Source: Paramicrosporidium saccamoebae KSL3
Taxonomy: Eukaryota > Fungi > Cryptomycota
Direction of reading: 5' to 3'
Length of the DNA stretch: 32,000 nt
Assembly: GCA_002794465.1 (NCBI GenBank)
Contig: MTSL01000050.1
Span: 75,087-107,086 of the forward strand
Shown: positions 1 to 30,857 of the stretch, one piece after another
Numbering within the stretch: the first letter of the stretch is position 1
Layout: each line of letters starts with the position of its first letter
The notes under the pieces: model-generated
Databases searched by the model: none
What the model was told of the DNA's origin: nothing
What the model saw: the letters and a program-made list of their open reading frames with translations, nothing else
Made by a program: the position numbers and the translations under genes

Positions 1-117
1 TGGCACATTTACTCGGCCGCTATGTATGTCAAGTCCATTGACATGACAGTCTTTTCTATTACATGGGCCCCACTCAATTGTAGGATTCAGAGCAGATAGT
101 ATGGGCTCATGGTCCAT
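1..117 (-). CDS. 5' end (39 codons) of a third S33-type alpha/beta-hydrolase paralogue, truncated by the window edge
   Basis: Manual translation from ATG at 117 gives MDHEPILSALNPTIEWGPCNRKDCHVNGLDIHSGRVNVP, colinear with the N-termini of the 542..2278 and 2716..4461 proteins. It shares their TAA-ATG start context and has CCCTGG 13 nt upstream. Confidence 0.9.
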   Translation of the reverse strand, partial: MDHEPILSALNPTIEWGPCNRKDCHVNGLDIHSGRVNVP

Positions 118-287
118 TTAACTCTGATGGCCAGGGATTTACCTCAAAAGGCGCTTCATAGACATTAATGGGAATGTGTCACATTCACAGAGTAGGGATA
201 AAGGGGTTTTAGCTGCCTCACAGCTTGAGTAAATCATCTGTCTTTTAATGACATTATTCGTAATATTCATCTTTGCCATTTTAGTGC

Positions 288-338
288 TATTAGGCAATGA
301 TGTACGCTACATGCAATATCCCAGGTGGCAGCACATGT
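288..338. promoter_or_regulatory. Conserved non-coding block upstream of a hydrolase paralogue (copy A, core CAGGTGGCA)
   Basis: Gapless 46/51 nt match to 2563..2613. The core CAGGTGGCA recurs at 4740..4748 upstream of the third paralogue. The regulatory role is inferred. Confidence 0.45.
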
Positions 339-541
339 CCGTCCCTGGGTCCCGGCGCTCGCTGATAATCAGAGAAAGTTGTTCAGTGCTATTAATCCGT
401 CCCGAAAAGCTCATTTAATTTGGTTTTACGTGCAGTCAAGTAGTAAATAATAGTGAACAGTCTTTTGTTGTTGTGTTTACAATGTCCAGGCTATCTATTA
501 TATTTGCCATGTAAGTATTATAAAATTGTCGCTGTACATAC

Positions 542-2278
542 TTAGAACAGGTCTTGGAATTTCAGAAGCAGCACTAGAATTGCTACAATGAAAAAAATAG
601 CCTCATTTTTCAAACTGAAGTATTCTTGATAAAACTCAGTAGCTGAGGCATAGCGGTGTATTAAATCCAACTCGGCAGATGAGGCATAACTTCCCATCTC
701 GCCAGCCTCTAGGAACACCGGTATAGAGTCCATGGATGGACTGTCCAAGTCATTTCTGTCGGACACACAGTCCCACATTTGTGCATACTTTCTATGACCG
801 GAAAAGGTCCAGTCCAACTTGTATGCCTCGTCAGTCTTATGCACACACGACTCGAAATCGAAGCCAGTGGATTTTCCAAAAAAAGCCTCCCACTCAAAAT
901 GGTCACGGCATTCTCCCCTGTATCCGCCACGATGGCCGCGATTGTCAAACAGCAGCCATTTCTTTGTCGGAGCGTCAATCGACTCAAAGAGGGACCATGC
1001 TGGCATGTAAGGGGTGACAAGGTCCATCTTGCTCGCCATCATATAGATTGAAGTTCTACGGGTAATGGCTGGACGCTCCTCGGAGAGCTTGCGACCCTTC
1101 AGGAACGGTTCCAGGAGTTTCCAGCCTTGGTAGTATGGTTCCAGATAATACACTTCCGGGTGTAGGTCTGTGTTATCAAAGAGTGGTTCGGGTACACCCC
1201 CTGAGAAATCCTGATAATCCACATCAAGACAAATAGCGTAATTCACTAAAGTATTACTGCGAGCATTACTTCCACCATCATCTCCTTGCGATGAAAGGAT
1301 CTCTAGTATGGGCTGCAAGACTTTGGTACGGTATTCTGCCGCATTCATGCAATTTTTGGTGGCCGTCAGGAATGGAAGCAAAAGCTGCTGTGACCTAAAG
1401 TTTTTATCTTTTTTCAGCTCGATTGAAGATTTACTCAGTAGCTTGTACAGCACCTTGACGATCTCGAGAGTACGCTCTCCCACTGTGCCCGTGAGCTTGA
1501 TCCCCAGGCTATCATGAAACATTTTGGTGCATTCGTTGTGATCCTCATTGCCCAGATTCAGAACCGCTAAATTCATAGACCCATAAACGTCGCCTCCCAT
1601 CTTGCGACGGCAAAACTCGTCTTTGGCACACATTTCAGCCAGGCCAACCAAGCTTCTTCTGTGCTCCACTCCTGAAATTGAAGGAACACCCCCGAGAAAG
1701 GCACTGTCAAATATGTTGGGAGTCAGTTGCACGATATGATGGGCCCATTGAGCACCATACGAAAACCCGTGCAAAACAAGCCGAGCTGAGATGCCCATTT
1801 CTGTTCGTATCGCTATGGCAAGGACCGACACGTCTAACGCTGCATTAGTCATTATAAGATCTCGAATGTCAAAAGCTTTGCCCTCAAATGCTTCTGAAAG
1901 TATATCATGACTATCCCTTGATACGTCTCCCACTGCTGAGAACTCCCCTGAGCAGCCTAGCCCTCTGTGGTCAACAAGATATGCAGCGACAGATTCGCCA
2001 TACCCTTTAGCCAGCCGAATCGCATGCTGTCGTTCTCTTTCCCCGCCGTAGCCAGGACCACCGGCGAGAAGAATTACATGGGCTTCTGGGTGACTATCAG
2101 GGTTGATGTATCGTGCGACGTGCAACGAAAAACGCTTTCCCTGTGGCTTGTCGTAGTCTGACAGTACATCCAATTTGCCACTACGTACATCAAGTCCCTC
2201 GAAAAGCCAGTCCTTTTCACTGGGTGGCCCCCACTCCACTAGAGGATTCAAGGCAGATAATTTGAGCTCGTACCCCAT
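542..2278 (-). CDS. Alpha/beta-hydrolase, peptidase S33 / TAP-like family, C-terminal hydrophobic tail (578 aa)
   Basis: Motifs: LAGGPG oxyanion region, YLVDHRGLG, nucleophile elbow GFSYG, Asp in SKMDLVTP, His in DNRGHRG. C-terminal tail AIFFIVAILVLLLKFQDLF. Confidence 0.85.
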   Translation of the reverse strand: MGYELKLSALNPLVEWGPPSEKDWLFEGLDVRSGKLDVLSDYDKPQGKRFSLHVARYINPDSHPEAHVILLAGGPGYGGERERQHAIRLAKGYGESVAAYLVDHRGLGCSGEFSAVGDVSRDSHDILSEAFEGKAFDIRDLIMTNAALDVSVLAIAIRTEMGISARLVLHGFSYGAQWAHHIVQLTPNIFDSAFLGGVPSISGVEHRRSLVGLAEMCAKDEFCRRKMGGDVYGSMNLAVLNLGNEDHNECTKMFHDSLGIKLTGTVGERTLEIVKVLYKLLSKSSIELKKDKNFRSQQLLLPFLTATKNCMNAAEYRTKVLQPILEILSSQGDDGGSNARSNTLVNYAICLDVDYQDFSGGVPEPLFDNTDLHPEVYYLEPYYQGWKLLEPFLKGRKLSEERPAITRRTSIYMMASKMDLVTPYMPAWSLFESIDAPTKKWLLFDNRGHRGGYRGECRDHFEWEAFFGKSTGFDFESCVHKTDEAYKLDWTFSGHRKYAQMWDCVSDRNDLDSPSMDSIPVFLEAGEMGSYASSAELDLIHRYASATEFYQEYFSLKNEAIFFIVAILVLLLKFQDLF

Positions 2279-2562
2279 TTAACCCCGATGACCAGGGATC
2301 TATTTCGCGGGGCGCTTACTAAATATTAACACGAAAGAGTGTATTAAATTTACAGAATAGTGGTAAAGAGCCTTTCCTAAACGCCTTAACTTGAATGAAT
2401 CTTTCTATCAATTGGACTACCGGTTCTTTGTCTCGTTATTAATCATGGTCACCAGTCTTCTTGTAATGTTCTATCTTTTGTTTACTTCCACTTTCGCAGT
2501 CAACAACTGTTTCTGAGCGGCCTCGTTAATAACGTTCATCCTTCTGTTTGCCATCAGAGTAT

Positions 2563-2613
2563 TATTAGGTAATGATGCACGCTATTTGCAATATTCCAGG
2601 TGGCAGCACATGT
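2563..2613. promoter_or_regulatory. Conserved non-coding block upstream of a hydrolase paralogue (copy B)
   Basis: 46/51 nt identical to 288..338, with CAGGTGGCA at 2597..2605. Confidence 0.45.
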
Positions 2614-2715
2614 GATCGAAATGATGGTGAACCATCTCTTGTTGCTTTGCTCACAGTCTCTAGGCTATCTATTAGGTTTGCCATGCAGATATTATAAAAT
2701 TGTCGCCGCACATAC

Positions 2716-4461
2716 TTAGAACAAGCCTTGGAATTTCAGAAGTAGCGCTATAATTACCGTGAGAATCATAGCCGTATTGCTGAAAATGCGGTATTCCCGA
2801 TACAACTCGGTAGCCAAAGTATAGCGATATATTTGATTCAACTCGGCGAAGGAAGCATTGAGGCCCAACTCACCAATCTCTAAAAACACCGGTACAGGGT
2901 TTATGAGTGGACCGTCCAAGTCATTTCTGCCAGGTACACAGTCCCACATCTGTGCATACTTGTCATGCTTGGAAAAGGTCCAGTCCAACTCGTATTTCTT
3001 GTCAGTCCTACGCACGCATGACTCGAAATCAAAGCCGGTGTATTTCCCAAAAAGAGCCTCCCACTCGAAATGGTCATGGCACTCTCCCCAATACCCATCA
3101 TGATCCCGGTTGTCAAACAACAGCCATTTCTTTGTAGGAGCACTGACCAAGTTGAACAGGGACCAGGCTGGCGTGTAAGAGGTGACAAAGTCCATCTTAC
3201 TCGCCATCACATAGATGGCAGTCTTGTGAGTAATGGCTGGATGCTCCTCGGAGAGCTTGCGATCCGTCAGAAACGAACTTAGGAGCCCCCATTCCTGGTA
3301 ATAAAGTTTCTGATAAAACACTCTTGGGTGTAGGTCTGTGTGGTCGGAGAGTGGTTCAGGTACGCCCTTGGGGAAGTCCTGATAATCAATATCAAGCCGA
3401 ACAACACAATTCACTATATCATTCCATTCATAAAGACTGTGGTCATTAGGTGAATGAATATTTGCTCCTTGCGATGAAAGGGTCTCTAATATTGGCTGTA
3501 AGACTTTGATATGGTGTTCTTCCGCATCAGTGCACCTTTCGGTGGCCATCAGAAGCGGGAGCAAAAGCTGCTGTGACCTGAAATTATTGCTTCCGTGCAG
3601 TTCTTTGAAAGAATTTGTCAGCAGTTCATACAGCGCCTCAACGATCGTGAGAGCACGCTCTCCCACTGTGCCCGTTGGTCTGATGTCCAGACTGTCATGA
3701 AACATCTTGGTACATTCATTGTAATCCTCATTGCCCAGATTCAGAACCGCTAAATTCATAGACTCATAAACGTCGCCTCCCACCTTGCTGCGACAAAACT
3801 CGTCTTTGGCACACATTTCAGCCAGGCCGATCAAACTGTCTTTGTGCCCCACTCCTTTAATTGGAGACACACCTCCAAGAAAAGCACTGTCAAATATGTT
3901 GGGAGTCAGCTGCACAACATGATGGGCCCACCTGGCACCATATGAAAACCCTCGCAACACAATTCGGGCCGAGGTGTCTAATTCCGATCGTATTGCTATG
4001 GCGAGCATGGACACATCTAACGCCGCGTTAGTCATGGTCAGATCTCGAATGTCAAAAGCACTGCCCTCAAATGCCTTTGAAAGTGTAGCATTACTAGTCT
4101 TTGATAAAGCCCCGTCCAACAGAAACTTTCCTGAGCCACCCAGGCCTCTGTGGTCAACAAGATACGCAGCGACAGATTCGCCATACTTTGCAACCAGCCT
4201 AATCGCATTATTTTGCTGTGTCTCCCCGCCGCGACCAGGACCACCGGCAAGGATAATTACATGGACCTTCGGGTGACTACCAGGTTTGGTGTAGCGTTCG
4301 ACGTACAGTGAAAATCGTGTTTTTAGTGGTTCACCATAATCTGACGGTACATTTACTCTGCCGCTCTGTATGTCAAGTCCATTGAAATAACAGTCTTTTT
4401 TAGTGCATGGTCCCCACTTAACTGTAGGATTCAAGGCAGATAACTCGAGCTCGCGCCCCAT
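2716..4461 (-). CDS. Alpha/beta-hydrolase, peptidase S33 / TAP-like family, tandem paralogue (581 aa)
   Basis: Colinear with 542..2278. Motifs LAGGPG, YLVDHRGLG, GFSYG, SKMDFVT, DNRDHDG, and hydrophobic tail AMILTVIIALLLKFQGLF. Confidence 0.85.
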   Translation of the reverse strand: MGRELELSALNPTVKWGPCTKKDCYFNGLDIQSGRVNVPSDYGEPLKTRFSLYVERYTKPGSHPKVHVIILAGGPGRGGETQQNNAIRLVAKYGESVAAYLVDHRGLGGSGKFLLDGALSKTSNATLSKAFEGSAFDIRDLTMTNAALDVSMLAIAIRSELDTSARIVLRGFSYGARWAHHVVQLTPNIFDSAFLGGVSPIKGVGHKDSLIGLAEMCAKDEFCRSKVGGDVYESMNLAVLNLGNEDYNECTKMFHDSLDIRPTGTVGERALTIVEALYELLTNSFKELHGSNNFRSQQLLLPLLMATERCTDAEEHHIKVLQPILETLSSQGANIHSPNDHSLYEWNDIVNCVVRLDIDYQDFPKGVPEPLSDHTDLHPRVFYQKLYYQEWGLLSSFLTDRKLSEEHPAITHKTAIYVMASKMDFVTSYTPAWSLFNLVSAPTKKWLLFDNRDHDGYWGECHDHFEWEALFGKYTGFDFESCVRRTDKKYELDWTFSKHDKYAQMWDCVPGRNDLDGPLINPVPVFLEIGELGLNASFAELNQIYRYTLATELYREYRIFSNTAMILTVIIALLLKFQGLF

Positions 4462-5013
4462 TTAGCTTCGATGGCCAGGGATTTATTTCAAAGGCATTCC
4501 ATAAGAACTAATGCGAAAGAATTGTATCCACAGAGTAAGACAAAGGGTCTTAGCTATAGACTTTACAGTTCTAATGCATTATTAATTTTGGGACGACTAG
4601 GCAGCCTTCCCGTTCCAAGAGGAATTCCAAGTGCTTCCTGTGTGGATGTGTATAAATTAATTTATTGAATCGCATCTTTAGTTTGATGAGGCATCCTAAT
4701 ATCGCGTGGCTGGGGCAAAGCCACGTATACGTGCCTTGTCAGGTGGCAAGAAAACTCTTACTATTACTATTACTCTTACTCTCAATAAAATCATACTCCT
4801 ATAGTCTTTTCAGGTCGGAGATGAGATCTGTACTTTTGACTGGCCAGCTTCAACTTTTCGGTTTCAAACGTTTCACTCTGAATAAATAACCTGCTGGCCA
4901 GGACATTACATTAATGGAATTATTGTTCAGTATACCCTCTGGTGCACATAAACCCGACCATTTATCTATTTTATTTACAGTTACCAATCTTGCCCGTAAT
5001 GCCAAGAGCCTAC

Positions 5014-5932: not shown

Positions 5933-7614
5933 TTAATAGCGACGATGGTACAGGACAAGTCGTTCGTAGTGATCCTTTCGTTTTTTGGTCGGCACAACGA
6001 TTCCAACCAGTTGCAGTTCGTGAGCTGACCTCAGGAAGCGCAATATTAAATCAGATTCGGCCTCTTTGCGGTGTGGATCAACGACTTGACGGAAGCTGAT
6101 GAACCAGTCCAATGTGTTGATGAGCCTTCCACATTCCGAGGCTAATCGATAGGTCAGGCTCGTATCGGGACGTCTTGTATCAGCATTCTTGACAATTGTG
6201 CCATTTAAATAGAATTCGGGATGAGTCAGGGCCAGCTGCACTGACTCGCAAATTTTGGGCGAGGTTAGTTTTATGGTTGAGCGTCCCAGAGGAAGTAGTA
6301 ATATCTCGTAGAGAGGTACCAGGTCCCACTTTTCAGGCATCATCCGATCCACCCACTCTGAAATGACGTCAATGCAATCTGGAAGCACCGAATCTGATGC
6401 GGCCAAAAGGTCTTTCACAAAGGGGCACTGTAAATCAAGACTCTTTCTGAATGCAGACAACTTTCGGGCCAATTCTTCGGGATCATCGTTTGCCCTAATC
6501 TTTCGTGCAAGTGTGTCAAACCACGAGTGCTGCCGTTGTTTAATAAACAAAAGCCCCGTCAAAAGGTCTGCAGTCTCGCATAGACCCTTACCAAACAATT
6601 CACAAAGGGTGACCAAAACCCGAAATACGGCAGCAAGTCTGCGAACAGCCGTCTTGGCATCGCAAACAAGTGCATTGCACAGCTCTTTCAACTCTTTTTT
6701 GTCTTCCAAATTAATTTCCACCATGAGGCTTTCAAGACCTCGCCGGAATGACGGCACGCTGGCACATAATTCAACATTTCGTTCTACATGGCTCCATTCC
6801 ATGAGCGACAGACCTAGTAGGTTCTTGATGGAATTGCGTGGATTTAGAGATTGGCAAGACAAATCCTGCAATCTGCTAATCAGATCTGCCGAGGGGATAA
6901 TTTCCAGGCTGAGCAGTTCGCAGACAATCTCTGCCAAGATATTCATGGGGGGCCGAGAGGAGACTGCACTATGATTAAGAGACATTTGCAAGGGCAGTGG
7001 TAGGCGTGTCAGAAAGCCAATGTCATCGACTACCCACCCAACTTGACCCATCGTTCCCATCATTGTGTATAGTCTCTGGAACGCCAACGCCGGCATTAGA
7101 TGAGCGTCACTAATAAATAGCCCCAATGTACGAATCCCCTTTTGTTCAAAATAGGTCTGAAGCTCTGCAATGTCCCATGCGGCGGGACAGCCCGTGTTCT
7201 CGGCTATAATTTTAAAGACACTCTGTGCGCTAACGGGGAGAGTCAGTGACATTCTCACCAGTGCCGTCTGTTCGTCGATCAGATTCTGCGCCGACTCGAA
7301 TGTCATGGCCATGTCTGAATATTAGAAAGACTGACTGGATACCGCAGGAAGGCATATCAAGAAAGATTTGTCCCCGTGAGTCGTAAATTGTGTGCAATAG
7401 CCGTTCCGCAAATAAATGCTGGGACTCGTTATACAAATCCTAAAATCATTCAGAATAATAGTGACAAATACATCGACAACCCCATTCACATGCGAAATTA
7501 GCCTGAGAGCGGCATCTTGTTTGACGGTGTGCGTAGAGTGTTGCTTCCCTATAAATTACGGCCAAGTGAATAATGCACACCCTTTCTCGGTGGTCGATAT
7601 GACACTGCCGTCAT
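5933..7614 (-). CDS. ORC3: Origin recognition complex subunit 3; exons 7614-7581, 7548-7472, 7439-7343, 7314-5933 (529 aa)
   Basis: C-terminal winged helix PDTSLTYRLASECGRLINTLDWF...RFLRSAHELQLVGIVVPTKKRKDH is the ORC3 signature. Three GT-AG introns (32, 32, 28 nt) join four exons in frame (1590 nt). Exon 1 is the least certain. Confidence 0.85.
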
Positions 7615-7742
7615 GTCAACGTCAAAATTCAACAAAATGTTTTATTATGTGATTTACAATACGGGCTATAGGGAACTGTTCACTACCAACTGACGTATCT
7701 GTTAATGGGTGAACCTACTTTTATTAAAGCATATGACTTCTT

Positions 7743-7800
7743 TGTCGCGTAGTGGGTTTCCGCATGACTTGGGTCGTGGTATTATCCCCACTACACGACA
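7743..7800. repeat. Inverted repeat / hairpin made of two copies of the dispersed TGTCGCGTAGTGGG element
   Basis: Arms 7743-7756 (tgtcgcgtagtggg) and 7787-7800 (cccactacacgaca) pair at 13/14 positions. The mismatch is a G-U pair on the minus strand. Confidence 0.8.
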
Positions 7801-7803
7801 TAT

Positions 7804-9250
7804 TTATGACAAACACGGGGTGTATATTGACAGAATTGAGGGTACAGATTCAAAGTAAATGTTTCCAGGTGAAACTAGCTCACCATCAACATCCAGTTTG
7901 ATACCTTCATATTCTCGAAAGAGAAGCTGGCATGCGCGTACCTTGCCGTGCCAACACCGTTCCGGATCGTCATGTAGAGAGGCAATGTCGTCATTGGCCA
8001 TTGCCTTTAACAACGTCGTTCTTGTAATTGAGACGTGTTTTGGTATCGTTATCACATCAATTGCATCTGTTTCACTTATCATGAACCGCGACGCGGGCAC
8101 TTTAAGGTCGAGCCATGCATGCTTAGTGGCCAAGAACGAGTGATATGCCGCCTCGGGTAGTCTTTTTATCGTGGGATTGTCTTGAGTGAACATGTGCTTA
8201 TACCGTGCTGTGATCATCTCGCTCTGATTGTCACTGGGAGGGATGCTGGGCGTCTCTGTATCGAGATATTCAATGACGGCATGGTACGTCTTGAATCTAA
8301 AAATCTGATATAGGGCTGAAAAGACCATCCGACATCTCCCACAACATCGACATCCATCTCCTCCAAGGTCCAAATCGGCAATCAGTCCCCAGAAGAATGC
8401 AAAGTGACCGTAAAATCGATGACCATTCTGTTCAAACAGCATGGCGTCAAAAGCAGCCTTTTTACCACGCAAAATAGAGTAACATGCATAAACGGGATCA
8501 GAAAGACCTATACTCCGGGCCACGGCATTACTGGTTCCGCACGGCATAATGCCAATCGGAAGATCTTTGGTGCTCTGCCAATCGGATCTCGAAAGCAATC
8601 CATTAATTACTTCATGTAGTAGCCCGTCACCTCCAACAACCATGAGCGACCCATAGATTTCCATGTCGATTTGCGAGGCCAGCATGTGGGCATGATGCTG
8701 GTGCTCGGTGAGAAACAGTTCATGGGGGATCTGTGCAGCATTAAACATGGACTCTACCACCCTTTCATAAGTCTTTAGAGCCGTCTTGTTTCCGCCCACA
8801 GGATTAAGGATTACGCAAACTTTTCGCTTCCCCCCCAAATTATCTTCCATAGTATTGTTGATGAGGTTGTACAAGACCCCCAATTCCGAGAGGTCCCTTC
8901 CCTCAATTACAATTTGATGAGGTTTAGCCTTTACGTAGGGATCAACTTGAGTGAATTCAATATAGAATACACTTAGTTTTCTCGAGTTGGAGTCAAAATT
9001 AAGAGCATAAATACTTGTCAACAGTACTAAAGGTAAGCATGGTAGAGGATGTACGTCCGTCCTGAGAAAAGCTGCGTGGATGGCAAGCTCTCCCACCCTT
9101 CTCCAACACCAATCTGCCCGCCCTCACTCCCACCTGACAGTCAGCATGTTTCCATCGCCCTTGCTGGATAAACAGAGCCTCCACCATCCAGGGATAAGAC
9201 GGAAATGGATATTGCCGTAGATGTGGACCAATGGCATGATCCGCGGACAT
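7804..9250 (-). CDS. Sphingosine / long-chain-base kinase (LCB4/LCB5/SPHK-like); exons 9250-9055, 9026-7804 (472 aa)
   Basis: DAGK-type catalytic motifs VILNPVGG, VVGGDGLLHEVINGL, IGIMPCGTSNAVA, LDVDGE. A 28-nt intron GTACAT...CTTACCTTTAG (9054-9027) joins ATG 9250 in frame. Confidence 0.9.
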
Positions 9251-15265: not shown

Positions 15266-15457
15266 CACAATACACCTGTTGTCTCTAGACTGGTAGTACT
15301 AAGTACACAATAAACTCATCATCTATGGGCCGCCGAGTCAGACACAATACACCTGCTGTCTCTGGACTGGTAGTCCTAAGCACACAATAAACTCACCATC
15401 TCTGGACCGTCGAATCAGACACAATAACCTCCCTACTCCTGCGACTCGGACACAATT
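15266..15457. repeat. Tandem repeat of about 77 bp x2.5, built from alternating 40/37-bp subunits that begin with CACAAT
   Basis: CACAAT at 15266, 15306, 15343, 15383, 15420 and 15451. Units 15266-15342 and 15343-15419 are near-identical. Confidence 0.85.
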
Positions 15458-15579
15458 AAAATCAACCTTGACAGCCAATCAACGCTCAATTAGAAGAGGC
15501 ATCCAATCATTGTGTCCAAATCTTGGTTACTAATAATAGAAGTGTACATATAAACCATCAGTCAAACCGTGACGCCAGA

Positions 15580-17721
15580 ATGACAATAGAACGATCGCTA
15601 ATTCAAGCAAGCGAGATAGTGTCATTGATTACAACACTGCTGTGCAAGTGCTATTTGTTGAGTTCTCTGAATGAATTGACCAAGTGGCGTCAGTATCCCC
15701 GGATCCCAGCCCTCCTGATTCCCGATGCGGTACTCATTCTGCTACTTGGAATGGCCATGCATTTTGCGTTGCGCAGGTCAGAAAAGCGACGCAGCAAGAT
15801 GGGAATGGTCGCTGTGATGGTTTGGTCAGTGCTCACTCTGATGCTCGTGTCATTTATAAACTCGGTGGGAGGCGCCTATTATGAAGTATCGGGGGCAATC
15901 TTCCAATGGTCGACGGGATTTGATTTTCTCAAAGACATTAAAACTGCCGTAGAGTTTGGAGGGGCCAATTCTGGCCCAGCAGTGTTTTGGATGTGGATTC
16001 ATCTGTTCATCTTTTTTGGAGTGGCGGCGCTATTGTATTCCAGGACACGCATGAGGGAGTACTACTCTTTGAATCTAAAGATAATCGAGGATGAAGACGC
16101 TGAAATGGACAAAGACGAGGATGACGAAAAGACTTCCGGTTATGGGCTGTGGATACTAGGCGCAAGCATCACAGTGTATTGCATCTGGGCAATTATGACC
16201 GGACCCAAGGTTGGCAATTGGAACATGCTCTGCGAACCGCAGCTCGTGTCCTTTACCAAGGCCGCCTGTGGTGCAGTATGGTCATCCAATCCCGTTGTCA
16301 TGACCGCCCGTGTCGGGGAGGATGAGTATAAAAATTGCGAAACGATAAGATCCCTATTTGACGTATACACCAAGGCCAAGCAAACCTGCAGCAAACAGTC
16401 AGCACCGGACTTTAGATTCACCAAGCGCACTGAAAATCATCAGATCAAAAATGTCATTTGGGTATATCTCGAATCAGCAAGAAATGACATTATGCCTCTA
16501 AACAAGAATAGCGAATGGGTTAAGAAGAATCTTGACCAGAAGCTCATTGACGAGAATCCCATTTGTCCCTTCTTCAGTTCACTGGTTAATAAGGGCATTT
16601 ATGCCGAGGACGTGCGCACCATTGGGACTTTTACATTAAAGTCTCTACTCGGTGGGTTTTGCAGTGTGGTGCCGTTGCCGGTAAACCGACTGGTTGAATG
16701 GGAAAAGGAGCCGTACCGTAAGTGTTTGCCTCGCATTCTGGAGCAAAACGGCTGGGAGACGCTGTACATGCAGCCGGGTTCGTCTGCCTGGGATCACCAG
16801 CGGGACAATCTGCTCAAAATCGGCTTTAAGAACGCCCTTGGCTTTCAGGAGATTGATGAGGGAATGATTGTGGGGGAGCGCAAATCACGTTTCCAAAGTG
16901 TCAATTACTTTGGACGCGACGATATACCGCTGGTAGAGCCCATGATCGAATGGATTCTGGACAACAAGAAGAAGGGAAAATCATCGTTAGCTGCAATGCT
17001 CACCAACGTCAACCACGATCCATATTACGGACCAGTAGAATGGCCAATGTACAGCTTTATGAAGACCAGTGAGCCCAAAATCAACCGCTACCTCAACACG
17101 GTACGGTACACAGACGCCTTTCTTCACAAGCTGGTCAAGACGCTGGACGAACAGCATCTGCTCGAAGAGACTCTCCTTGTCATTATGGGAGATCACGGCA
17201 TGGCGCTTGGTGAACACAAACGAGTGGGCACAAATGAGAATCCCGAAGAGCCGATGATGAAGGTTCCACTCCTCTTCTACTCTAAAAACAAAGAGTGGTT
17301 GGCCAAAAACCCACCCAGGAGGATTCGCGAGACATGCTCCTCTTTGGACGTCCTGCCAACCATCCTCGACATCTTGAATGAAGACAAGAAGGTACCAGAG
17401 TACGTCTTTACCGACTATTATGAGGGAAAGAGTCTCTTGAGGGACGCTCGCAACAAACTCCAAATAACAACTGTCAATCCTGGTGGACATTCTATCGTTT
17501 TCCACGAGGACGGTCAAAAGGTGGTGGCAAAGTCGGATACGGACGCCGTCTATTATAATCTGAAGCGTGATCCCAACGAAGATGAACCGCTCGCCGAAGA
17601 AGAGCTGGACAGCGATAGCAAAACATTTTTTTCCACCATGATGGGATTTCGCAAGGTGCTCTTGCAAAAGTCGCTTGTTTTCTGGGATGCTCTTGAGGGA
17701 GTGCCACTTGATCTCGAATAA
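15580..17721 (+). CDS. Membrane-anchored LtaS/MdoB-like (sulfatase-fold, alkaline phosphatase superfamily) protein (713 aa)
   Basis: N-terminal multi-TM region, then NVIWVYLESARND (metal Glu), TFTLKSLLG (putative Thr nucleophile), TNVNHDPY, YLNTVRYTD and IMGDHG. No CxPxR. The first ATG is at 15580; an upstream exon is possible. Confidence 0.8.
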   Translation: MTIERSLIQASEIVSLITTLLCKCYLLSSLNELTKWRQYPRIPALLIPDAVLILLLGMAMHFALRRSEKRRSKMGMVAVMVWSVLTLMLVSFINSVGGAYYEVSGAIFQWSTGFDFLKDIKTAVEFGGANSGPAVFWMWIHLFIFFGVAALLYSRTRMREYYSLNLKIIEDEDAEMDKDEDDEKTSGYGLWILGASITVYCIWAIMTGPKVGNWNMLCEPQLVSFTKAACGAVWSSNPVVMTARVGEDEYKNCETIRSLFDVYTKAKQTCSKQSAPDFRFTKRTENHQIKNVIWVYLESARNDIMPLNKNSEWVKKNLDQKLIDENPICPFFSSLVNKGIYAEDVRTIGTFTLKSLLGGFCSVVPLPVNRLVEWEKEPYRKCLPRILEQNGWETLYMQPGSSAWDHQRDNLLKIGFKNALGFQEIDEGMIVGERKSRFQSVNYFGRDDIPLVEPMIEWILDNKKKGKSSLAAMLTNVNHDPYYGPVEWPMYSFMKTSEPKINRYLNTVRYTDAFLHKLVKTLDEQHLLEETLLVIMGDHGMALGEHKRVGTNENPEEPMMKVPLLFYSKNKEWLAKNPPRRIRETCSSLDVLPTILDILNEDKKVPEYVFTDYYEGKSLLRDARNKLQITTVNPGGHSIVFHEDGQKVVAKSDTDAVYYNLKRDPNEDEPLAEEELDSDSKTFFSTMMGFRKVLLQKSLVFWDALEGVPLDLE

Positions 17722-18086
17722 AGGCCTATAATACTGTGTTATATAAGATTAATCAGCCGGGTATTTGAGGATAGTTGCCTAGTTTGAAAAAGACATTTGT
17801 GTAATGTAGAGGATCGATTAACTAGGCATTTGTCCCAATATTGAAGGGAGAGCCAAACGAGGGATGGGGACATCGGCTCGCCAATGTTTGGATACTATGC
17901 TGGTGAGTCCGCACCAGCTGTTTGTCCCCTGTCGCCCATTTCTATTAGCACCGCGGCAATACTCCCACCACACAACATTTATAACCTTTTACATACTGGC
18001 CTTCGCACGCGGGAGAATCAAACCTAATTAGGACAATACCATATTTGGGCTCCACTGACTTTCCCCCATCATCGACCAACCAATCA

Positions 18087-20328
18087 ATGTCGTCGTCCAC
18101 ATCTAACGTTGCCAACCAACGAGAAGGCCGGAACGCATACTGGAGGCCAATTACAGCGGTGCCGGTTAATCTTGAAACGCTACAATACGCAATTCTAAAA
18201 ATAGGAGTGGTTGATTGACATGACGATAGAGAGAACAGTTGTCACAACTACAGGGATTGTTTCCTTAATAAGCACAGCGGCGAGCAAGTGCTACTTGATC
18301 ACCTCGCTGAGCGAGCTGCGAAAGTGGAAGAATTGTGCACGAGTTCCCGCCTTGGTGATCCCTGACATATTGCTTATGACAGCGCTGTCGCTGGGAATGC
18401 TCTGGGCCATAAACATGTCGGGACGACGCAAGAATGGCGTGCTGAGATATGGAATCCTGGGCCTTTCACTGGTGCTCTTTGGTCTGGTTTCCACAATCAA
18501 TTCGGTGGGAGTGGCGTACTTTCAGCAGTCAGGTGCCTTGGTGGAATGGAGCACAGTGTTTGATTTTCTGGTGGACTTTAGGGCTGCTTCGTCCTTTTTC
18601 GTTGCCAACTCGGGACCGAGCTTATTCTGGATTTGGCTTCACGTCTTTTTCTTTGGCTGCGTGCTCTTTTTCCGATGGAAGCGCAATGGGAGTGAATACT
18701 ACACTCCGCTTTTGGCTCCAAAGACACTCGACGAGAGGGCCTCCTATGGTGTCAGTACCTGGCTGTCCGCCATTCTGGTGATATTTTACACAAGCTGGGC
18801 TCTTTTGACGGGACCAAAGGTGGGCAACTGGAGAATGCTCTCCGAGCCGCAATTAGTATCATTTTCCAAGGCGGCATTGGAAGCTCTCTTTGGAGACTAT
18901 TTTATTCGCTTCAGCTCTCCCCATGATGGCGGTGATATGTATGATGAATGCGAAACCATTTCCTCCATGTATGATGTATTCTCGAATCAAAAGCGACGAT
19001 GCACCAAGAGAATGTCTCCCGATTATTCCTTCTTAAGACGTACTCCAAAGAGCGAAATTAAAAACGTTGTCTGGCTGTACCTAGAATCGGCACGCAACGA
19101 CATTTTGCCGTTTAAAAATGACAGTGCTTGGGCAGTGGAAAATTTGAGTGCAGAGTTACGCCAACAAAATCCATTTAGCCCCTTTTTGAGTTCTCTCATT
19201 GAGAAGGGTCTTTACTTTGAAAATTTTCGGACAATCTCCACCTATACCCTCAAGGCCCTGCTGGGTGGACTGTGCAGTGTGGTCCCACTTCCAGCGAATA
19301 GACTGATAGAGTGGAATCTAGAACCGTACCGAAAGTGTTTACCTCGAGCCCTACACGAGAATGGCTGGGAGACTCTCTTTATGGAACCTGGTACAGCCGA
19401 TTGGGAACACCAGCGTGAAAATCTGGCCAAGATTGGCTTCAACACCTCGGTAGCCGTGGAAGAGATGGATGCCGGGATTTTTGTTGGCCCCTACCGATCA
19501 CGGTTCCAAGAAGTCAACTACTTTGGAAATGACGATCTTCCCATTATCGAGCCGTTGATTGATTGGATGAACAAGAACCGACGTGAGGAAAAGCCTTCCT
19601 TTGCCACACTTTTGACAAATGTCAATCATGATCCGTACGACCTGCCAAAGGGATGGGAATCGGTGGACTATGTAAAGAACAATGACCCCAAAGTGAACAA
19701 ATTTCTGAACACGGCCCGCTACACTGATAACTTTGTGAAGGAATTTGTCAAAGCCCTTCAGGACAATGGCATCCTCAAGGACACATTGCTTGTGGTTATG
19801 GGAGATCACGGAATGTCTCTTGGCGAGCATTCCCGCGTGGGCACCAACGAGAATTCAGAGGAGCAACTGCTTAAAATTCCCTGTCTCCTCTATTCAGAGA
19901 ATGAAGCGTGGAGGAAAAAATATCCACCCAAGCGACATTCGGATGTGCACTCTTCACTAGACATGCTCCCCACTATAATGGACATGTTGAATGAGGATCC
20001 GAAAACGCCCACATCTCTCTTCACCGAACATTACGAAGGAGGCAGTCTGGTACGACGACCAAAACGCGACCCATTGCACATTAGTCTGATCAATCCGGGC
20101 GGTCACTCCACAGTCTTTTGGCAGACTGACAAGAAAGTAGTTCTAAAGGGCTATTCCGATGCCGTGTTCTATGACCTGCAGCTCGACCCGCAGGAGAATG
20201 ACCCCAAGCCTATTGACGTTGTGGAAGGGGCGGATGGGAAATGGTTCAATCGGATCCTGAACTTTAATGAGTTGCTGATGCACAAGATGCGACAGGCGTG
20301 GAATTCTACTGCGGAGCCTGTGGAGTAA
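18087..20328 (+). CDS. Tandem paralogue of the LtaS/MdoB-like protein; probable exons 18087-18164, 18205-20328 (alternative start 18220)
   Basis: Same motifs (YLESARND, TYTLKALLG, TNVNHDPY, VMGDHG). A 40-nt intron GTTAAT...CTAAAAATAG joins ATG 18087 in frame. Confidence 0.8.
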
Positions 20329-20451
20329 TAAGAAATGATGTAATAAAGACTATTTTGCGTCGACCATGCAGAGTGGCATAGTCGAGTGATATTATATAGT
20401 GGCGGTTTGAATTAATGGTACAAAATGGCAAACAGATCTCGGAGACGACAA

Positions 20452-20476
20452 TGTCGCGTAGTGGGGATAAAGCCAC
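20452..20476 (+). repeat. Copy of the dispersed intergenic element
   Basis: tgtcgcgtagtggggataaagccac matches 7776-7800 and 30831-30857 read on the minus strand. Confidence 0.75.
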
Positions 20477-20682
20477 AGACGGGAGGGGGGTCGTCCACTG
20501 CTAATCCTAGAATAGTATGGATACACATTTCACTGTCCTCAAATACCCAGCAACTAATCAACCCTCTGCCTCTACGTCACAGTAGCAACGTGCGTTGACA
20601 GTGCGGAATAGCACAGTCAGGGTCTAAGCTTGAATAATTGGATTCCTTACAACAACTCCTTTGCGCTGATAATAACTGCATT

Positions 20683-21123
20683 TTATACAAACGAAAGCAG
20701 ACAAAGGACGACGTAGGACAGAACTGAGAACAGCGGAATGGTCCAGAAACCATACACCGGCCAGAATGCAATGGTTAAACCTAAAGCCGAGGTGATGCCA
20801 GAGAGTGTCAGCACTTGCACTGGTCTTCGCATCCGAACCCGCCAATGTCGGAACGTCGCACCCCGCTGTAACACGTGTCGCCAAATAATCAACAACAGGG
20901 TGCAGATAATGAATACAAGTCCGGAAGCAATGCCCACATGGTACGGCCTGCTCCACAAAAGCGTTGGGTTTAGGAGTAGGGCAGGAATTCGACTAGAATG
21001 AAGCAGTATGGCGCCCCCAATGACGACTGTGAGACGAAATATGGTATCTAATGCTGATGGACCGTCTCCCGGAACCTCGTCAATTTCAACTCTTTTCTTA
21101 CCCGAGCCCTTCTCCCGAGGCAT
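20683..21123 (-). CDS. Small multi-pass membrane protein, TMEM128-like (146 aa)
   Basis: Four hydrophobic segments. C-terminal W...R.P...L.GI.SALGLTIAFWPVYGFWTIPL resembles the TMEM128 family pattern (recognised from memory, not searched). Confidence 0.6.
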   Translation of the reverse strand: MPREKGSGKKRVEIDEVPGDGPSALDTIFRLTVVIGGAILLHSSRIPALLLNPTLLWSRPYHVGIASGLVFIICTLLLIIWRHVLQRGATFRHWRVRMRRPVQVLTLSGITSALGLTIAFWPVYGFWTIPLFSVLSYVVLCLLSFV

Positions 21124-24580: not shown

Positions 24581-24688
24581 AGAATGAAAAGAGACGTATG
24601 GAAAATGAAAGGAGACGTGTAGAGAATGAAGTGGGACGTGTAGAGAATGAAATGAGACGTGTAGAGAATGAAATGGGACGAAACGTAG
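24581..24688. repeat. 21-bp minisatellite, about 5 copies (consensus agaatgaaatgagacgtgtag)
   Basis: Units start at 24581, 24602, 24623, 24644 and 24665. Confidence 0.9.
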
Positions 24689-29716: not shown

Positions 29717-29823
29717 CAATGTATGGCAACACGTAACAACGATGACAGAGGGTCTCCATGGCAACGCGGGTTGTTATCTGCTTGTGGCAACAGACGACAC
29801 CAACACTTCTGTGCACATTGATA

Positions 29824-30615
29824 ATGGCACAGTATAGCACGTCCTTTCAGCCCGACGACCTATGGTCCTATTTGAATCTTGATCCGTATTCTTCCGATCT
29901 CCTCCTCCGGCCGAACACTGAGTCTATGCGGACCGTAATGAACATGCATCCAGTACGGCCCCTCCCAGCTCCCTCTGCAGCGGTGTTTGCACAGCCTACG
30001 GACAGCACTATGGGCGGAATGTACAAGCCCGTGATGCCAGCCAATCAGCGCGTCATCCGTCCCTATTCCCCACGTAATCGACTGGTCAAATCACGAGGTG
30101 GTCCCATATTGTCCACCATGCCGAAAGCCCCCTCGGCAGCAAAGGAGCGTATCCGACAAAATATCCATCGACGGCTCCGCGAAAAGATTGAGAGGGCAGC
30201 AGTGGAGACGAAGAATCGGAAAAAGATTCTTGATGAGGAGCACGAGGCGGACGAGCTGGCGCGCAAGGATCTGGCAAGCGGGAGGGGACGAAAATCGCGT
30301 TTTGATCGAGACATTTGTTCGCCCCGGTCCAAGCGAATTGCTCCGAATATGCCTCTCATGATGGTTCCCGTTCCCATGGAGGAGCTTTTCTACGATTTCC
30401 ATCCACACAACATTGGGTCGGGCCAGTCTGGATCTGCCGTCCAAATTATCTCTCCGCTGTTTGATTTTGGCGAGGTTACTTCACCTGCCACTTCGATGGG
30501 ATCCAATAACACTTTTGTGCAAAGTCCCGAGTTTACCCAGACTGACTTTGATCAGTATTTTGTGTCTTCCACAATGGATTTTGCTTCTGTTGATGACATT
30601 TTCACCGGCCTATAG
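29824..30615 (+). CDS. Hypothetical protein with a basic helix and an acidic-aromatic C-terminus, possible transcription regulator (263 aa; upstream ATG 29758 possible)
   Basis: Long uninterrupted ORF containing KERIRQNIHRRLREKIERAAVETKNRKK and the C-terminus DFDQYFVSSTMDFASVDDIFTGL. Confidence 0.65.
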   Translation: MAQYSTSFQPDDLWSYLNLDPYSSDLLLRPNTESMRTVMNMHPVRPLPAPSAAVFAQPTDSTMGGMYKPVMPANQRVIRPYSPRNRLVKSRGGPILSTMPKAPSAAKERIRQNIHRRLREKIERAAVETKNRKKILDEEHEADELARKDLASGRGRKSRFDRDICSPRSKRIAPNMPLMMVPVPMEELFYDFHPHNIGSGQSGSAVQIISPLFDFGEVTSPATSMGSNNTFVQSPEFTQTDFDQYFVSSTMDFASVDDIFTGL

Positions 30616-30830
30616 TGATACATTATGTTGATGAGCGAATTAGTTTTATTAAAATACGTGGTGCCTTTGTGATGTAGAGAATGAGAAGTGAGATCTGTGT
30701 CCTTGCAGTTTTAAAGCTTGCAGGGAGCAAGGTTTCTTTTCGCATGAATTAGGCCATTGGACCAGCAGCGAACGAGTTTTCGTCTCGCCTCGTCTCATCC
30801 CTTCACGTCTCTCTCCGCCTGGCAAAGTAT

Positions 30831-30857
30831 GTGGTGTTATTCCCCCACTACGCGACA
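30831..30857 (-). repeat. Copy of the dispersed intergenic element
   Basis: Minus strand reads tgtcgcgtagtgggggaataacaccac. Confidence 0.75.

Follow-up and report, generated by a model that had tools for sequence, protein, structure and literature searches.

The locus and the copies of the repeat

The spacer considered here separates two convergent genes of Paramicrosporidium saccamoebae, a sulfatase-like gene with the stop codon at 20328 and a TMEM128-like ORF on the minus strand (20683..21123), and contains a 130-bp copy of a dispersed repeat; the originally reported feature consists of the first 47 nt of this copy and 10 nt of the flank. Coordinates without a prefix refer to the window, that is, the whole stretch of 32,000 nucleotides that was analyzed, which belongs to contig MTSL01000050.1 of assembly GCA_002794465.1. 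No other public contig contains the HSP60 gene of the window. The accession MTSL00000000 is that of the genome paper on this species, an intranuclear parasite of Saccamoeba, where the genome is described as comprising 7.28 Mb, with 46.9% GC and 3750 protein models (PMC5701793). The TMEM128-like ORF (Pfam E 1.6e-16) is missing from the public gene list, as is an ORF for the complex I subunit NDUFA5 at L008 16475-17210 (Pfam E 1.4e-13); both are probably unannotated genes. For two proteins of the window, the annotated gene models differ from the ORFs. Lineage-specific tandem families are located at window positions 1-4492 and 15523-20328 and at L002 11440-18942 and L005 2182-12838; these include three esterase-like and two sulfatase-like genes, at least five members of a 312-aa family without a Pfam domain, and three paralogues of 950-1120 aa, with relatives detectable only in P. 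saccamoebae and a few metagenome or Logan contigs. A 77-bp tandem repeat (15266-15430; 2.2 copies, 88% identical) is located in the spacer that precedes the first sulfatase-like gene.

In the first-pass annotation, the feature was described as a dispersed element of 25-27 bp. The quoted 25-27-mers are present in the window, and the shared 14-mer TGTCGCGTAGTGGG is indeed over-represented, with exact matches at 7743 (plus strand), 20452 (plus strand) and 30844-30857 (minus strand) and one mismatch at 7787-7800 (minus strand), that is, four matches against 0.10 expected, a count reached in 0 of 100 shuffled sequences. The proposed unit size and the statement that the flanks are not shared do not hold on the 3' side of the motif, where the similarity continues, over a total of 58-234 bp, to a second conserved end. 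The motif is not seen alone: in every case, it forms the initial 25 nt of a longer repeat whose other end is also defined.

The sample used to delineate the family comprises 106.4 kb, about 1.5% of the P. saccamoebae genome, gathered via the window proteins and their paralogues (49.4 kb of contig 50, 26.4 kb of contig 3, 17.8 kb of contig 128 and 12.8 kb of contig 95), and annotated genes cover 74.8% of it. It contains nine robust copies, on contigs 50, 3 and 128, which add up to 1.47 kb or 1.4% of the sequence, and two tentative relics besides. A copy is considered robust when it is recovered by an nhmmer profile built without that copy (E 2.6e-29 to 4.7e-06). When the first 93 kb of the sample are compared with themselves, this family is the sole dispersed non-genic repeat. 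The copies are the following.

Window 7743-7800, minus strand: element copy, 58 bp (leave-one-out nhmmer E 4.7e-06)
Window 20452-20581, plus strand: element copy, 130 bp (leave-one-out nhmmer E 1.7e-25)
Window 30668-30857, minus strand: element copy, 190 bp (leave-one-out nhmmer E 6e-11)
L002 14215-14448: element copy, 234 bp, robust
L002 19483-19707: element copy, 225 bp, robust
L003 19352-19485: element copy, 134 bp, robust
L004 8693-8855: element copy, 163 bp, robust
L007 15346-15532: element copy, 187 bp, robust
L008 1843-1989: element copy, 147 bp, robust
Window 17737-17977, minus strand: tentative, strongly diverged copy, 241 bp (leave-one-out nhmmer E 0.26 only)
Window 4702-4755, plus strand: tentative decayed relic in a tandem spacer, left part TATCGCGTGGCTGGGGCAAAGCCACGTATACGTGCCTTGTCAGGTGGCAAG (family-profile nhmmer E 0.015)

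The copy at 20452 starts with TGTCGCGTAGTGGGGATAAAGCCAC and ends with ...CCTCTGCCTCTACGTCACA; its flanks (ACAA/GTAG) keep no duplication. It shares 88.8% identity over 125 nt with a copy on contig 3 (L003 19355-19476), and the copy on contig 128 can be aligned over about 150 nt with both the 20452 copy and the one at L003 19352. The copy at 30668-30857, with the left end TGTCGCGTAGTGGGGGAATAACACCAC at 30857 and the right end ...TTCTCTACATCACA at 30668, is located 52 nt past the stop codon of the ORF 29758..30615 and about 340 nt upstream of the next gene; again, no duplication is kept in the flanks (TGCT/AAGG). A 21-bp tandem array of 4.8 copies (unit AGAATGAAATGAGACGTGTAG) in the convergent spacer at 24581-24680 resembles the reverse complement of the right end of this copy (30668-30691, TGTGATGTAGAGAATGAGAAGTGA); the array may be a minisatellite derived from the element, or the resemblance may be coincidental.

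On the minus strand, the shortest copy (7743-7800) consists of the full left end TGTCGTGTAGTGGGGATAATACCAC and 16 further nt of family sequence and closes with CCCACTACGCGACA, an inverted left terminus (13/16 ungapped), so that it has two left-type ends; the stretch 7743-7756, previously taken for a separate partial copy, is the second arm of this single 58-bp inverted-repeat element. The two strands of 7743-7800 fold into hairpins with z-scores of -4.2 and -5.6 against shuffled sequences, and the flanks AATA/AAGA match in three of four positions. The public gene list includes, at window positions 5933-8850 (L001 6616-9533), a model of 786 aa with DAGK_cat and WHD_ORC domains that joins the ORFs 7804..9096 and 5933..7312 across the spacer containing this copy; this DAGK-ORC3 model is probably a mis-fusion.

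Membership of the strongly diverged copy at 17737-17977, between two sulfatase-like paralogues, is not secure. It shows a left end TGTTGTGTGGTGGG (11/14), the blocks CAAATGCC..TAATCGATCCTCTAC and CTCAAATACCCGGC, and the end ...ATATAACA, and a 20-nt inverted match of 90% joins positions 17756-17775 and 20532-20551. The possibility that 17737-17977 and 20452-20581 make up a composite element enclosing the sulfatase gene was considered and rejected, given that the outer flanks differ.

Termini, target-site duplications and empty sites

Aligned copies define an element that starts with 5'-TGTCGCGTAGTGGGGATAA.. and ends with ..CTCTACGTCACA-3'. The left end of the family is sharp (TGTCGCGTAGTGGGGATAATACCAC), and alignment of longer stretches shows that distant copies also have a common right end, ...ACTAATCA..CYTCTACGTCACA. 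Between the ends, the blocks ..TCCACTGCTAATCC..GGATACACATYTCAC..CAAATACCC..CTAATCA.. are separated by stretches of variable length, and an internal module is present once or twice depending on the copy. Conservation is far stronger in the left 19 nt than in the interior. The two ends are imperfect inverted copies of each other, so that the element is bounded by an inverted repeat of about 13 bp that conforms to the pattern TGTNR...YNACA: the left end reads TGTCG and the reverse complement of the right end reads TGTGA, both of which fit TGTNR. The consensus ends TGTCGCGTAGTGG and TGTGACGTAGAGG match in inverted orientation at 10 of 13 positions, and across ten aligned copies the mean inverted match between the left and right ends is 8.9 of 16, compared to 4.1 +/- 1.8 for internal control windows. 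All nine robust copies start with TGT, and seven of the nine end with ACA. With lengths of 58-234 bp (241 bp for the tentative copy), the copies are too short to encode a transposase.

Insertion of the element can be observed directly among the tandem genes of the 312-aa family downstream of the window. Four paralogues follow one another there, and their four spacers can be aligned over the full length; an additional block of 234 bp, TGTCGCG...GTCACA, with CATG at either side, is found only in the spacer after the second paralogue, whereas the three empty spacers contain a single CATG or GATG at the insertion point. The element is therefore mobile and its insertion generates a 4-bp duplication of the target site. 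Perfect 4-bp duplications flank four of the nine robust copies (CATG, GACC, CGCT and CATG), and two more show a match in three of four positions; by our own calculation, with a chance of 1/256 per copy for a perfect 4-bp duplication, at least four in nine would occur with a probability of about 3e-8. When the boundaries of eight copies were displaced by as much as 6 nt in either direction, the optimum, with three perfect duplications, was found at the called ends, where 20 of 32 duplication bases match; the 168 shifted boundary pairs average 8.3 matching bases. Two copies, at L002 14215 and L002 19483, are 80% identical but have unrelated flanks and different duplications, and the similarity between them detected by blastn ends exactly at both termini. 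The remaining three robust copies (20452, 30857 and c3_1989) show no recognizable duplication, which is consistent with, although no proof of, considerable age; among copies about 10% diverged from their source, some 40% would be expected to retain intact duplications.

Taken together, these observations indicate that the 25-base motif is no free-standing cis element but the sharp left terminus of a non-coding mobile element of 58-234 bp, a reading to which we assign a probability of about 0.9. The possibility that the motif is the conserved end of a small non-autonomous mobile element had been listed in the first-pass annotation as an alternative, and it is this alternative that the empty-site comparison, the 4-bp duplications and the arrest of similarity at the termini bear out. 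The inverted cgaca noted at 20446 belongs to the flank and lies outside of the element.

Genomic distribution and the regulatory and RNA readings

None of the copies in the 106.4-kb sample, of which genes make up 74.8%, is located within an ORF, in agreement with the earlier statement that all copies are intergenic; the 58-bp copy falls within an annotated gene span, in an intron of the DAGK-ORC3 fusion model of NCBI. The nine copies occupy four convergent, four tandem and one divergent spacer, in variable orientation to the neighboring genes. Some are located immediately downstream of genes: the distance to the stop codon is 3 nt for the copy ending at 7800 (the DAGK-like ORF 7804..9096, minus strand), 14 nt for L004 8693 and 15 nt for the tentative relic at 17737. 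The family appears to survive only between genes because insertions into coding sequences are removed by selection; in a genome that consists of genes to about 75%, such insertions would be purged and the elements would persist in the spacers, often just past stop codons. In coordinates extended beyond the window, the robust copies of this contig start at 7.7, 20.5, 30.9, 34.0, 39.2 and 43.6 kb, with the tentative relic at 17.7-18.0 kb, and once all these copies are counted, the regular spacing of 10-13 kb suggested previously vanishes. Extrapolation from the six copies in the 74 kb outside of the window, a sample that is biased in its choice, would yield some hundreds of copies in 7.28 Mb, more than the total of 0.53% repeats, mostly simple or low-complexity, reported for this genome (PMC5701793). 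The genome paper mentions no transposons, integrases or motifs, and such terms are absent from its supplements (PMC5701793); literature searches returned no description of P. saccamoebae transposons. The family is of an ordinary kind but apparently undescribed in this genome.

No related copies were found in other organisms among the JGI metagenome contigs, IMG/VR, prokaryote genomes and three contigs of related uncultured organisms. In particular, the exact degenerate pattern has no match in the JGI metagenome contigs or IMG/VR, the three related contigs contain no copy of the element, and the single match in a prokaryote genome, in an AT-rich Saprospiraceae contig, was judged to be due to chance, the rest of the motif being absent. 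Another conserved non-coding block, about 60 nt long (GAGTCGCGAYCYAYCTCYC..TAATCCTTTGACGTGG..AACGG..CCCG.CACA), shows no evident relation to the element. It is found in P. saccamoebae, where it precedes the ribosomal protein L2 gene by 167 nt (L004 13205-13270, plus strand), and at unrelated loci in two JGI metagenome contigs of a relative (L010 1381 and L011 846); it has no match in Rfam and may represent a promoter module, a gene for a small RNA or a further repeat.

The leading interpretation in the first-pass annotation was that of a genome-wide cis element, such as a transcription factor site with CGCG or GATAA cores, a terminator or boundary, or a replication origin signal. Such a role of the 25-mer in the host could account for the much stronger conservation of the left 19 nt compared to the interior and for the clustering of copies near the 3' ends of genes (four convergent, four tandem and one divergent spacer, with three copies at most 16 nt from a stop codon). 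However, any transposon is expected to have a conserved terminus: if only the copies with an intact end are recognized and propagated, the left end would be the best conserved part without any use to the host. Furthermore, the motif is invariably part of the longer element with its second end and target-site duplications, is found in both orientations relative to the neighboring genes, is irregularly spaced, and is dispensed with by three paralogous spacers, and the proposed stem shows no covariation. We therefore regard a host cis element as highly improbable, although individual copies may have been secondarily co-opted, for example, as 3'-end signals.

The least probable of the readings considered is that each copy represents a gene for, or a retro-copy of, a small structured RNA, such as a SINE with an A-box-like TCGCGTAGTGG, an H/ACA-like snoRNA or another ncRNA. 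Read as sequence, the core matches the Pol III A box TRGCNNAGTGG at 10 of 11 positions, one copy (L002 19483..) contains a hairpin followed by T5, and in the left approximately 60 nt, GTAGTGG can pair with CCACTGC. The RNA reading nevertheless finds no support. ARAGORN detects no tRNA or tmRNA in the window and five loci; a search of Rfam yields nothing at the gathering score for the window and four loci and nothing relevant at E <= 10 for two copies, a miRNA match at E 8.8 being attributed to chance, so that there is no match to a known RNA family. There is neither a B box nor an A-rich or microsatellite tail, the duplication has a constant length of 4 bp as opposed to the variable, longer ones of LINE-mediated insertion, and three long copies yield only weak consensus folds on either strand. 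The GTGG...CCAC stem, which had been thought to be kept in each full copy, is broken in three of ten aligned copies and is no better than in shuffled sequences; no pair is changed on both sides, so that compensatory changes are absent. The extrapolated number of some hundreds of copies is too high for a gene family of the snoRNA type. Ideas of an H/ACA-like RNA, an HDV-like ribozyme or a 5S-derived element were dropped given the absence of the defining pairings and of an Rfam signal.

Class of the element and comparison with known systems

The TGTNR...YNACA ends in combination with the 4-bp duplication suggest a DDE enzyme of the integrase type as the probable agent of insertion; the end sequence and the length of the duplication, from which this assignment is drawn, characterize both Gypsy LTRs and the Ginger1 and Ginger2 transposons (PMC2836005). 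An enzyme of this kind, similar to the retroviral integrases, would cut the two target strands with a stagger of 4 bp, and the 4-bp target-site duplication would result from the repair. No reverse transcriptase, integrase or transposase domains were detected among the called genes and the ORFs of the largest spacers in the 106.4-kb sample, nor did this sample, about 1.5% of the genome, contain an autonomous element bounded by the same ends. The copies are diverged by 12-20% or more and no two of them are identical, which implies that the family is old and probably no longer active.

Two kinds of non-coding element have to be weighed. We prefer, at a little better than even odds, a MITE-like non-autonomous element propagated by a cut-and-paste mechanism, because the 58-bp copy has two left-type ends, the sizes span a wide range (58-234 bp) with duplications of internal modules, and neither paired copies nor remnants of pol are seen in the 106 kb. 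The competing reading, which we consider a substantial although minority possibility, is that the copies are solo LTRs of a Ty3/Gypsy-type retrotransposon, or LTRs of a TRIM-like miniature derivative, left behind by recombination between LTRs, with the motif representing the U3 end recognized by the integrase. It accommodates the TG...CA ends with the Gypsy-type TGTNR, the duplication of 4 bp within the LTR range of 3-6 bp, the solitary dispersed copies, and the short imperfect inverted repeat of all copies but one, which resembles LTR ends more than it does the terminal inverted repeats (TIRs) of Ginger; strings resembling CCAAT and TATA boxes in some copies (e.g., AATCCAATGGCCCTTTTATAG in L002 19483-19707) are as in U3. 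It is difficult, in contrast, to see how an LTR could have given rise to the 58-bp copy with its two left-type ends; at 130-234 bp, the copies would rank among the shortest LTRs, and the wide range of lengths, with variation by internal modules, is atypical. Furthermore, no paired direct copies, internal domain, primer-binding site, polypurine tract, or remnant of reverse transcriptase, RNase H or integrase were seen in 106 kb: the copies at L002 14215 and L002 19483 are direct copies 5 kb apart but each has its own duplication and they enclose host genes. Fungal Ty3/Gypsy and Ty1/Copia elements usually produce 5-bp duplications, which also counts against solo LTRs. So does the low repeat content given in the genome paper (PMC5701793).

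Under a more specific scenario that we consider unlikely, the MITE-like family would be the fossil progeny of an integrase-related cut-and-paste transposon of the Ginger or IS481EU kind, maybe acquired in the nucleus of the amoeba host, and some of the copies located 3-16 nt past stop codons may supply signals for 3'-end formation or termination. The phylum of the amoeba host carries Tdd/Ginger2 elements. No representative from Rozellomycota or Microsporidia is reported in the accounts of Ginger (PMC2836005) or IS481EU (PMC10045372), and the only possible fungal vestige of Ginger has been noted in Malassezia (PMC2836005).

Altogether, the attractive but wrong reading as a new regulatory or origin motif is replaced by a tested one, and a genome credited with 0.53% repeats turns out to carry a real transposon family. 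This finding bears on the persistence and loss of transposons during genome reduction toward Microsporidia. The insertions can be used as site markers for the comparison of strains, and they expose annotation problems such as the gene model fused across a copy.

Among the known systems, Helitrons can be set aside, with the expected 5' TC and 3' CTRR and no duplication compared to the TGT/ACA ends and the 4-bp duplication of the element, and so can SINEs, as the element shows only an A-box-like string, no B box, no tail, no relationship to a tRNA and a duplication of constant length. Ginger1 and Ginger2 (Tdd) share the TGTNR termini and the 4-bp duplication, and non-autonomous copies that share the ends of the autonomous element are known in Ginger (Bao et al. 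2010, PMC2836005); however, the TIRs of Ginger are 40-270 bp long compared to about 13 bp here, and the targets are CCGG/CCGT or RTATAY as opposed to CATG, GACC and CGCT (PMC2836005). The reported duplications are of 4 bp for Ginger1, 4-5 bp for Ginger2 and 3-6 bp for LTR elements (PMC10045372). The IS481EU elements are similar in having TGT...ACA termini, TIRs mostly below 50 bp, 4-bp duplications in several families, and non-autonomous families (Kojima 2023, PMC10045372); unlike the present element, they are known only from the parabasalids Trichomonas and Histomonas, and many of their families have 15-16-bp duplications (PMC10045372). Finally, MITEs as typically encountered differ from the P. 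saccamoebae family in that its inverted repeat is only about 13 bp long and imperfect in most copies, and the combination of TGT...ACA with 4 bp is unlike that of the common MITE sources (Tc1/mariner with TA, PIF/Harbinger with 3 bp, hAT with 8 bp). Like MITEs, the elements are short (well within the customary limit of about 800 bp) and non-coding, with many copies dispersed near genes at unrelated loci; they combine a terminal inverted repeat with a target-site duplication of fixed length and with filled and empty sites; and they come in size variants produced by internal deletion or duplication, down to the minimal copy of 58 bp, which consists of little beyond the two ends.
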